From positions 868,001 through 932,000 of the forward strand of contig NW_027271188.1 of NCBI RefSeq assembly GCF_040938485.1: DNA of 64,000 nt, in the 5' to 3' direction. The notes below the pieces were generated by a model. It made no database searches. It was given only the letters and a program-made list of their open reading frames with translations, and was not told the DNA's origin. Positions 16,701 through 19,211 of the stretch are shown here, one piece after another. Both the position numbers and the translations under genes were made by a program. Origin of the DNA: Diadema antillarum. Lineage: Eukaryota. Positions within the stretch are counted from its first letter, which is position 1. Each line of letters starts with the position of its first letter.

Positions 16701-19211
16701 GTCTTATTTAGTGAAGTACCGCACTGGTAATTTTAGTCAGGCTCCCAAACATAAGTCATGATGGGAAATGTGATCATGGAATGATATTACCTAATTCTGA
16801 TTTAAAAAGTTAGAATTGGTAACAAAACATGAATTCTAGCTTTGAAGTGCTGAAATTAATAACTTGAATGTCTGTTTGATCAGTATGCACTTAGAGACAC
16901 AGGATGCAGCAGACTGGCCATGAATAAAGAAAAGATTGAAATATTTCTGGAAGTGTTACATCTCCAGTATTGAACTTTATTGAGCTTTAGATGTGTGATG
17001 CGAACGCTAACACTACACTAGTTTGGCAAAAAATAGTGTTCCGCACATACGCAAGACGGCACTTTCCATTGTTTCCATTGTCCAACCTGGGGGGCTGCAT
17101 CATCTTAGCGTTAGCATTGCAGATCTAAAGCTCGCTATTGTACAATTTGTATAGGGCAAGACTGAGATAAGATAGCAAAAGTACTGCTGTGATGACCAGA
17201 CTCACTTAGGACACCTGATGAGTGCTTCTTTGATATCAAAATGAGTTATTGGTTCTGAGCAATGACAGAGCGATTGATGTTGGGCAACAGTCATACCAAC
17301 GTACATGAAAATTACTGTCAAGTTGTATGCAATAGATTTAAAAGGTAGGTGAATTGCTGTAGATATGTGCTGGAAAATATTTTGTGTGTACAGCTGTGTC
17401 CATGACTGTATTAGCAGGGCAGTGTCTTTTTTTCCATTGATTATTTGAATTCTTTATATTTGGTAGTACAATGTACTTTGGTAAAACTTCATTTCCAACT
17501 AGCATACAGATAGTAGACATGCTTATCATTAACTTATTCTTTATAAAAATATCTTTAATAGAAAATGTAGTGTGCCATCAGCATTTAACCACAAAAATTC
17601 CCTGAAAGACACCTGTTATTATAAATTCTTTGGGTATGTAAATGGTCTACTTGTAAAGTTACATCTCAAAATTATGTTTGTGCTTGTAGGCATCCCTCCC
17701 GACCAGCAGCGTCTGATCTTTGCCGGTAAGCAGCTGGAGGATGGCCGTACTCTCTCTGATTACAACATCCAGAAGGAGTCCACTCTCCATCTGGTGCTCC
17801 GGCTCCGTGGTGGCGCCAAGAAGCGCAAGAAGAAGAACTACACCACACCCAAGAAGAACAAGCACAAGAAGAAGAAGGTCAAGCTGGCTGTGCTTAAGTT
17901 CTACAAGGTGAGACAGCTTGGCTGGCATTACATGGTGATCTTTTTTTTTTTTTAAATTATTATTATTTGCAGCTACCTCTTATGTCATGAAAGAAACTGA
18001 AAGTCTTACCCATCATAATGCCTTCATTTCTACATGTAGGAGGAAAGTGGAGTTTGCTTTAGTTGACTGACTAATATTTTTTACATGGGAAAGAGGGATG
18101 GCTGTTTAGGAAATCTGTGGCAAACTAATGGTGACCACAGCAGTCTCTTTTGTTGATGTTTCACAAGGATTGCTTAGGTAATGAAAGTCAATATTTAATG
18201 ATTAAATATCAGGGTTTGAATGGTTGGTGTTCTTTCCTTTGATGTGACGTAAACATAATATCGGGGGGGGGGGGGGAGGGGGGTGGGGGGGAGGGATGGT
18301 GTGTCGTTTCTTTAAAATTTCAATGTTTGATTGTGTGTGTGTGTGTGTGTGTGTGTGTGTGTGTGTGTGTGTGGTGATTGATCCATACACATACAAGTTA
18401 AGGTTGTACCTGTTATGATTTCTCTGCCAGCCTTAGTATTTTTGAGCAGTACTCTTTTCAATCTGAAATATTGAAAGGAGTAGAAATCCAGTCGTACATT
18501 GCTGTGATGATGTAACTCACTTAGGACACCTGATGAGTGTTGCATTGATATAAACATGAGTTATTACTTCTGAGCAATGGCAGACACAAGAAGGATCTTT
18601 GGCAAAGAGTTATCGTGATTACTCAACCAAGTCATTTCATAGTTTGTAAAATCCTGAAAGTTAGCCTCACATTTTTTTTTTTTAACAGAGGTGTAGTGAT
18701 ACAAACTTTAGATTGATGCAAATTTTGTTGCAGTCAAGTGACAGAGATAATTGTAGCATTCATATCCATTCAATTGTATCACATAGATCTGTTCAAAGCA
18801 GCTTGAATGATATGTAGGATGATTTGCATTATTTAGGGACATATAAGTAGTCTTTCGTCAAGGTTTGTAAAACATCTCTTATCATGAATCACATACTAGA
18901 CACATACCTGGTAGTGTATTCTTGATGAATGCGAGTTTGTGTACTACGCATGTCAGTGACTAAAACACAGTCTGAGGGGGTAATGTCTTACGTGCATTGC
19001 TGTTGCATGTCATCTGATAACTACCAATCCTCTCTTGATCATTTGTCCTTGCTTTCCTAAGGTTGATGAGAACGGAAAGATCACTCGTCTCCGCCGTGAG
19101 TGCCCCAGTGATGACTGTGGAGCTGGCGTCTTCATGGCCTCCCACTTCGACCGCCAGTACTGCGGAAAGTGCTGCCTCACATACGTCTACAACAAGCCAG
19201 GAGAGAAGTAG
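13716..19211 (+). CDS. RPS27A: Ubiquitin-40S ribosomal protein S27a (eS31) fusion
   Basis: Coding exons 13716-13763, 16522-16576, 17690-17907, 19062-19211 total 471 nt (156 aa + stop): [90 protein letters not shown]...[49 protein letters not shown]. AATAAA at 19403-19408. Confidence 0.99.
14442..14651. mobile_element. MITE, CTGTAAAA...TTTTACAG family (superfamily unassigned)
   Basis: TA|CTGTAAAAGTGGA ... TACTTTTACAG. Related copies at 3816 (partial), 22019, 27198, 35427. Confidence 0.7.
14820..15349. mobile_element. TTAA-flanked Kolobok-like MITE, family 2
   Basis: TTAA TSD with a ~32-bp near-perfect TIR AGGGAACCCAAACCCAAAGAGCAATGTGGATT. Interior shared with 33758 and 61769. Confidence 0.8.
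16982..17133. mobile_element. Small inverted-repeat (MITE-like) insertion in an RPS27A intron
   Basis: GAGCTTTAGAT.TGTGATGCGAACGCTAA ... TTAGCGTTAGCATTGCAGATCTAAAGCTC, a ~29-bp imperfect TIR. Confidence 0.55.
17182..17264 (+). ncRNA. Box C/D snoRNA, SNORD58/U58-like 28S guide, copy A (RPS27A intron)
   Basis: C box GTGATGA 17189-17195, D box CTGA 17255-17258, terminal TGC/GCA stem. Antisense element CTTAGGACACCTG (17205-17217) is the complement of conserved 28S CAGGUGUCCUAAG (recalled). A near-identical paralog lies at 18497-18579. Confidence 0.85.
18332..18373. repeat. (TG)n microsatellite
   Basis: Directly visible in the sequence. Confidence 0.95.
18497..18579 (+). ncRNA. Box C/D snoRNA, SNORD58/U58-like 28S guide, copy B (RPS27A intron)
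   Basis: Perfect 6-bp terminal stem CATTGC/GCAATG, C box GTGATGA 18504-18510, D box CTGA 18570-18573, same antisense element CTTAGGACACCTG at 18520-18532. Confidence 0.88.

Follow-up and report, generated by a model that had tools for sequence, protein, structure and literature searches.

Vertebrate SNORD58 (U58A/B/C, Rfam family RF00151) is a family of box C/D small nucleolar RNAs (snoRNAs) that resides in several copies in separate introns of one ribosomal-protein gene, RPL17 (PMC2817437). In human 28S ribosomal RNA (rRNA) the site of SNORD58A/B is Gm4198/4228 (PMC9616492). This G and the neighbouring U are both known sites of ribose 2'-O-methylation (Nm) (PMC1636440, PMC11550049, PMC9616492). 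Um4197 is assigned to SNORD58C by snoSeeker (PMC1636440), and in a recent human table the guide entry for Um4227 reads "Unknown" (PMC11550049). Overlapping D' boxes that give rise to two modifications are documented for snR48 of yeast (PMC5389607). Here we analysed a stretch of 64,000 nt from Diadema antillarum (GCF_040938485.1, contig NW_027271188.1, positions 868,001-932,000 of the forward strand), referred to as the window. All coordinates are positions within it, 1 being the first letter. Two consecutive introns of its ubiquitin-RPS27A gene each harbour one SNORD58-like unit. In the literature no paper was found that links RPS27A to SNORD58.

Two SNORD58-like units in consecutive RPS27A introns

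Judged by their sequence, the two units belong to the SNORD58 family of intron-encoded box C/D snoRNAs as new, sub-threshold members, and their kind of RNA and mechanism are already known. Copy 1 is located at 17183-17264 and copy 2 at 18498-18579, both on the + strand and matched by Rfam RF00151 and by our covariance model R1 (see below). The host coding region (13716-19211, + strand) was identified by its translations and by splice sites read directly from the sequence. Six-frame translation yields four coding exons on the same strand as the units (13716-13763, 16522-16576, 17690-17907 and 19062-19211), all with GT..AG borders. The protein was queried exon by exon, and homologues of the gene carry PF00240 and PF01599. 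Copy 1 resides in the 1113 nt long intron before exon 3, 426 nt 5' of the 3' splice site, copy 2 in the 1154 nt long intron after exon 3, 483 nt 5' of the 3' splice site. The latter intron is truly spliced, because a public Nanopore run contains a cDNA contig in which 17907 is followed immediately by 19062, the GT..AG intron being removed.

The units are 80-82 nt in length and consist of a 5' stem arm, GUGAUGA, a spacer, a 13-mer, CTGATGA, a loop, TGATAT, a spacer of 17-18 nt, CTGA and a 3' stem arm. Box C (UGAUGA, 17190-17195 in copy 1 and 18505-18510 in copy 2) and box D (CUGA, 17255-17258 and 18570-18573) fall into invariant columns of the family alignment A3 described below. Both copies thus combine GUGAUGA and CUGA with a terminal stem of 4-5 bp, the full 5-bp stem being formed by 17183-17187 with 17259-17263 in copy 1 and in the same way in copy 2. 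A probable box C' (UGAUAU, 17231-17236 and 18546-18551) aligns with the UGAUU-type C' of all relatives in A3. The antisense element, which in a box C/D snoRNA comprises at least 10 nt adjoining D or D', is represented by the 13-nt guide CTTAGGACACCTG (17205-17217 and 18520-18532), a perfect complement of the species' own 28S CAGGUGUCCUAAG. It lies directly upstream of, or overlaps with, the two D' candidates, which themselves overlap within CUGAUGA (17215-17221 with CUGA at 17215-17218 and AUGA at 17218-17221 in copy 1; 18530-18536 in copy 2). All these elements are on the + strand.

Together the units form an 85-nt direct repeat of 86% identity, 1315 nt apart, which is the sole long repeat pair in the 8 kb searched and contains an identical core of 25 nt (17200-17224 and 18515-18539). 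According to the pairwise alignment, similarity fades within a few bases beyond the units. A preceding model-based interpretation of the letters alone (the sequence-only reading) had proposed exactly this: two U58/SNORD58-like units with C box, D box, terminal stem and identical core, duplicated in cis in consecutive RPS27A introns that are otherwise dissimilar. The units are found where it had placed them, the pattern is far beyond chance and the interpretation as duplicated box C/D snoRNAs is supported.

The 25-nt core is nearly palindromic. A 10-bp hairpin (-8.6 kcal/mol) is predicted, with ACUCA and UUAGG on one arm and CCUGA and UGAGU on the other, and in this fold the guide plus both D' candidates are buried. 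The same segment folds at 0 to -5.0 kcal/mol in relatives versus -8.6 in the window. A further AUGAGU is present 20 nt downstream in each copy. With only two paralogues, the conservation of the hairpin arms is not significant. The overall folding energy of the units is unremarkable (z-scores -1.2 and -1.9).

At gathering thresholds Rfam gives no match anywhere in the window. In E-value mode, applied to 1.6 kb, SNORD58 is the best family for both units (copy 1: 17184-17263, 28.7 bits, E=0.0015; copy 2: 18499-18578, 26.3 bits, E=0.0068). These matches span the full model and align box C, the antisense element and box D, while the remaining C/D families in the E-value-mode list reach lower scores by box-only matches. 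Hence the proposed family is the one that Rfam ranks first, but at scores under its gathering score of 42 bits. Model R1, a covariance model built from 21 family members, scores copy 1 at 63.3 and copy 2 at 68.1 bits. The units are probably unannotated genes, absent from annotation at Rfam thresholds. No new kind of RNA or mechanism is revealed, but two snoRNA genes are added to this genome that such an annotation would overlook.

The guide of SNORD58 is recovered in full. The antisense element upstream of D' is identical to CUUAGGACACC, as the sequence-only reading had stated, and ..AGGUGUCCUAAG.. occurs in the species' own large subunit (LSU) rRNA. In the genome (1.75 Gb in 2963 contigs) the 13-mer CAGGTGTCCTAAG, the target expected in 28S, is present in tandem arrays ~11.5 kb apart, which Rfam identifies as LSU rRNA with small subunit and 5.8S rRNA upstream. 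Its local context is ..AATGGTAACG-CAGGTGTCCTAAG-GCGAGC.., the stretch holding the candidate methylation sites being CAGGUGUCC within the wider context ..GGUAACGCAGGUGUCCUAAGG... Guide and 28S form a perfect duplex of 13 bp through CCUG, the length originally proposed, with mismatches on both flanks. Elsewhere the rDNA unit shows no complementarity of more than 9 nt to either snoRNA. We calculate that a match of 13 nt between an RNA of 80 nt and ~6 kb of rRNA would arise by chance roughly 0.006 times. We infer that the target site is located in domain V, ~750 nt from the 3' end of LSU rRNA, near position 2650 of the Rfam model.

Searches with copy 1 (blastn), with a pattern of box C plus guide and with model R1 detect only four places in the genome, two units on the contig of the window and two on contig C878. 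Other pattern matches are not accompanied by C/D boxes, and their number is that expected by chance (46 vs 54 in the control). In the genome search with model R1, 150 of ~970,000 candidates were scored, and further copies elsewhere are likely absent. The RPL17 gene of this genome, which was located via PF00237 and translated exons, shows no SNORD58-like match by Rfam or model R1. C878:780000-789999 comprises the entire RPS27A locus again and can be aligned collinearly to 6.6 kb of the window, with 94.7% identity. In our reading C878 represents the other haplotype, the genome being highly heterozygous, and both haplotypes are probably included in the 1.75-Gb assembly. Copy 1 is identical on the C878 haplotype. 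Copy 2 differs by two substitutions (18544 and 18561), neither of which is located in a box or in the guide. Introns 2-3 differ between the haplotype contigs at 4.7% of aligned sites, so that ~7.5 substitutions would be expected in the 160 nt of snoRNA versus 2 observed (Poisson P ~0.02). The DNA-like runs X6-X8 were considered as data from related species and rejected, as their differences coincide with the C878 alleles. They probably represent polymorphism of the same species and no independent cross-species conservation.

Relatives in other animals and the second guide

Relatives were found by a protein query with the open reading frame (ORF) of exon 4, followed by inspection of contigs encoding homologues. 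A query with the whole exon-3 ORF was swamped by polyubiquitins, and the N-terminal stretch of S27a was too conserved for ranking relatives. In total, the RPS27A introns of four other animals contain 18 related units: one in GCA_013332715.1 (L045), five in GCA_029979725.1 (L046), nine in Mytilus trossulus (L048) and three in Helobdella robusta (L049). The L046 units reach 31.5-46.8 bits against RF00151, one of them (46.8) exceeding the gathering score. In the alignment of 21 sequences (A3), box C, the guide core, the UGA of C' and box D are invariant; these boxes and the guide core of the window are shared by its relatives, as the sequence-only reading would have it. In A3, 90.5% of the cells of the 5-bp terminal stem are paired, and 4 of its 5 pairs show compensatory changes. 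The observed covariation score is not attained in any of 500 shuffles and greatly exceeds that of slid controls. The RPS27A loci of a tick (L050), a nematomorph (L052) and a cyprinid fish (L051) yielded no unit, nor did an intronless fly-type gene (L064, L065) or the further contigs L047 and L053-L058.

Hosting by RPS27A is thus recurrent, being seen at minimum in one mollusc, one annelid and the species of the window, and the family duplicates repeatedly inside the gene. Because the same family also occurs there in the mussel, the leech and the other two assemblies, the association appears to be old and shared. The sequence-only reading had proposed a host switch into RPS27A. This is not supported, vertebrate RPL17 being the odd one out. 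The simplest reading of the sampled loci is that RPS27A hosting is old and that the RPL17 location of vertebrates is derived or an alternative. The family would then have resided in RPS27A introns since before the split of molluscs, annelids and the animal studied here, and the two copies of the window would have arisen by duplication inside the gene in this lineage. In several invertebrate phyla, a snoRNA family well known from vertebrates is housed by another ribosomal-protein gene, which bears on the long-term stability of snoRNA-host associations.

Most relatives differ from the window by a second guide. They carry AAGCGUUACCAU.. directly 5' of box D, which is absent from the short L046 units u1 and u2. 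It is complementary to 28S AUGGUAACGC, which is contiguous with the 5' edge of the first target. The units of Mytilus and Helobdella are spaced such that the second-guide duplex includes the nucleotide five positions upstream of box D, and for this reason they are regarded as double guides. In L046 u3-u5 a larger gap separates the duplex from box D, and it is more reminiscent of the accessory base-pairing of PMC3116282. The homologous segment of the window reads GAGUUAUUGGUU in copy 1 (17243-17254, + strand) and GAGUUAUUACUU in copy 2 (18558-18569, + strand) and aligns with the GCGUUACCAU.. guide of relatives. Pairing of this segment with the adjacent 28S is predicted at -4.9 and -4.7 kcal/mol, no better than for shuffled sequence, and no significant pairing of the 3' half with the species' own rRNA is found. 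Judged by sequence, the window snoRNAs are single guides, and the ancestral second guide 5' of box D would have decayed to a vestige in this lineage.

Three further observations were made at related loci. In Mytilus trossulus the RPS27A introns house, besides the nine SNORD58-like units, four copies (7453-7523, 8078-8148, 9088-9158 and 11941-12010 of L048) of a second box C/D family. The box-D guide of this family is ..GCUUACCAAAAGU, the complement of which was not found in those parts of the rDNA of the window genome that were examined. Contig L047 (ENA ERZ25073280) harbours at 1-700 four box C/D units in tandem upstream of the ubiquitin exon. They resemble the SNORD58-like units in layout but differ in target: their guide CUUUGGAGACC, followed by UUAUGA, is complementary, with one G-U pair, to LSU GGUCUCCAAGG, which is present in the 28S of the window genome. 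In L063 (ENA ERZ27247799) a weak match to model R1 (17.2 bits) is located at 2410-2480, 3' of the RPS27A ubiquitin exon. It retains the terminal stem, C', box D and the second guide GCGUUACC, whereas box C and the first guide are not recognisable, and may be a decayed or single-guide relative.

The predicted methylation site and rival explanations

Taking all findings together, we consider it probable that the units are intronic single-guide snoRNAs of the SNORD58 family which most likely direct Nm at the U of GG-U-GUCC. Once the RPS27A introns have been spliced, the units would be freed from them to form small nucleolar ribonucleoproteins with fibrillarin; box C/D snoRNAs accumulate as stable small RNAs bound by fibrillarin, NOP56, NOP58 and SNU13. 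The 13-nt element 5' of the internal D' would pair with 28S CAGGUGUCCUAAG and direct a single ribose 2'-O-methylation. The U, which corresponds to human Um4197/4227, is the most likely target, with D' taken as AUGA, a choice made because this box sits at the position conserved in the RPS27A-hosted relatives.

For the register, we counted the offset from the invariant GGACAC to the D'-like box in A3 and derived the nucleotide by the D'+5 rule. Offset 2, seen as CUGA in L046 u3-u5 and as UUGA in L045, selects the G of GGU-G-UCC, i.e. human Gm4198/4228. Offset 3, seen as AUGA in the window and in L046 u1/u2, as ACGA in Mytilus and as AAGA in Helobdella, selects the preceding U, which adjoins the SNORD58A/B site. 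Offset 0, a CUGA that is present exclusively in the window, selects the first C of UCC. The window reads GAUG at the G-selecting register, with AUGA one nucleotide later and CUGA two nucleotides earlier. The ambiguity of the D' box, CUGA and AUGA overlapping in CUGAUGA, is hence real, as already suspected. In contrast, retargeting by one nucleotide is no novelty of this locus: the U is a known Nm site in human (PMC1636440, PMC11550049), and a degenerate D' ending in GA occupies the AUGA offset of the window in 14 of the 18 relatives. Since L046 holds both offset classes within one gene, the two registers are seemingly real and serve the two neighbouring sites. The extra CUGA of the window differs from CCUUAUGA of L046 u1/u2 by one T-to-G change, by which the duplex was also lengthened to 13 bp. 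Lineage-specific traits are thus the extra canonical CUGA, the decayed second guide and the hairpin that embeds the guide.

Several points weigh against the interpretation as Um guides. In the vertebrate consensus of Rfam, ..GGACACCUUUGGA.., the GA likewise falls at offset 3 (UGGA), yet SNORD58A/B are annotated as guides of the G, so that the register alone cannot decide between U and G. The CUGA overlapping AUGA is a perfect consensus and could be the D' box in use. The hairpin predicted around the guide (-8.6 kcal/mol) could compete with target binding. Both copies, at 28.7 and 26.3 bits, miss the SNORD58 gathering threshold of 42 bits. Intronic C/D snoRNAs of vertebrates have their optimum at ~70-80 nt from the 3' splice site, and the 426-483 nt seen here are far beyond this distance. 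Moreover, a stable RNA of ~80 nt and its methylation activity are predicted from sequence. Weighing these points, we give methylation of the U alone nearly an even chance. That the C alone is methylated seems unlikely, and the same applies to more than one site, while the G alone or no site at all would each be rather improbable.

Among the rival explanations, two concern the canonical CUGA (17215-17218 and 18530-18533). If it were the functional D', the first C of GUGU-C-C would be methylated, which would mean a lineage-specific retargeting to a site three nucleotides from the conserved U. The box matches the consensus exactly and is fixed in both copies and both haplotypes, and in snR48 of yeast the choice of the modified nucleotide was influenced by a 5'-terminal C of the D' box (PMC5389607). 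However, no relative has a D' box at offset 0, and three of the four CUGA bases would also pair with the target, as complementarity runs through CCUG. The C is also not known as an Nm site in human 28S, for which none is listed between Gm4228 and Um4306 (PMC11550049). We therefore hold this explanation to be unlikely. The same low probability is given to a use of both overlapping boxes, whereby alternative C'/D' structures would place fibrillarin differently and one guide would methylate U and C. Two well-formed NUGA boxes sharing one base are indeed present in the window, and yeast snR13, snR48 and U18 modify two sites via unusual or overlapping D' boxes, but there the sites are 1-2 nt apart and the boxes are non-consensus, compared to a spacing of 3 nt here (PMC5389607). 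That the units are decaying or inactive relics of an ancestral double guide, which no longer accumulate or guide, is very improbable: the decayed second guide, the scores under the Rfam threshold, the long distance to the 3' splice site, the guide sequestered in the predicted hairpin and the polymorphism of copy 2 would fit, but neither the copies nor the haplotypes differ in box C, box D, the stem or the 13-nt guide, all of which are intact, the snoRNAs carry fewer substitutions than the intron around them, and the genome searches found no other SNORD58-type guide for this conserved site.

A broader scenario can be put forward tentatively. RPS27A may be the ancestral bilaterian home of SNORD58, with a double-guide ancestor that acted on adjacent 28S segments and gave rise to subclasses of U and G register. 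The U-register subclass would be the Um-guide type, to which the T-to-G change added a consensus D' in the lineage of the window, where it may create an extra Cm site. If true, the U-register subclass would be the type of guide behind the Um site for which one recent human table gives 'Unknown'. As a natural case, the overlapping CUGA/AUGA box could serve to test how the register sets the methylated nucleotide.

Other intron elements and comparison with known systems

Three stretches of the RPS27A introns contain other elements. Just 5' of copy 1, read depth in DNA-like runs rises to 20-60x that of the neighbouring sequence over 17020-17145, and many loose ends are seen at 17070 and 17137-17141. 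Short inverted repeats flank this stretch at ~16998-17020 and ~17100-17125, and it is probably a small dispersed repeat, similar to a miniature inverted-repeat transposable element (MITE-like), that was inserted in the intron. In intron 1, 14944-15225 (- strand) matches plant MIR8562 in the E-value mode of Rfam (61.7 bits vs a gathering score of 211, E=1.3e-9). Blastn shows an inverted self-match at 14814-15018, and the stretch is almost certainly a long inverted-repeat element and not a MIR8562 microRNA. In intron 3 a G-rich tract followed by a (TG)n microsatellite (18257-18375) differs between the haplotypes and draws enormous read depth from unrelated repeats.

Compared to vertebrate SNORD58, the window units share the box C/D architecture, the antisense CUUAGGACACC 5' of D', the 28S target region and the occurrence of several copies in separate introns of one ribosomal-protein gene. 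They differ in the host (RPS27A instead of RPL17), in length (80 nt versus 65 nt), in the D' region (CUGAUGA versus UUUGGA) and in a complementarity that is one bp longer, i.e. 13. In yeast snR48, snR13 and U18 two alternative D' registers likewise exist beside a single guide (PMC5389607). In contrast to the window units, whose two registers are predicted, these have non-consensus boxes, modify sites 1-2 nt apart and belong to an unrelated family with another target. Further close systems are the RPS27A-hosted relatives of L045, L046, L048 and L049. These resemble the window in the host gene, in the introns flanking the ubiquitin/S27a exon, in the 5' guide, the UGAU-type C' box and the covarying terminal stem as well as in repeated duplication in cis. 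Most of them carry the second guide GCGUUACCAU.., which is decayed in the window, whereas the consensus CUGA overlapping the D' position and the flanking ACUCA/UGAGU hairpin arms are exclusive to the window.

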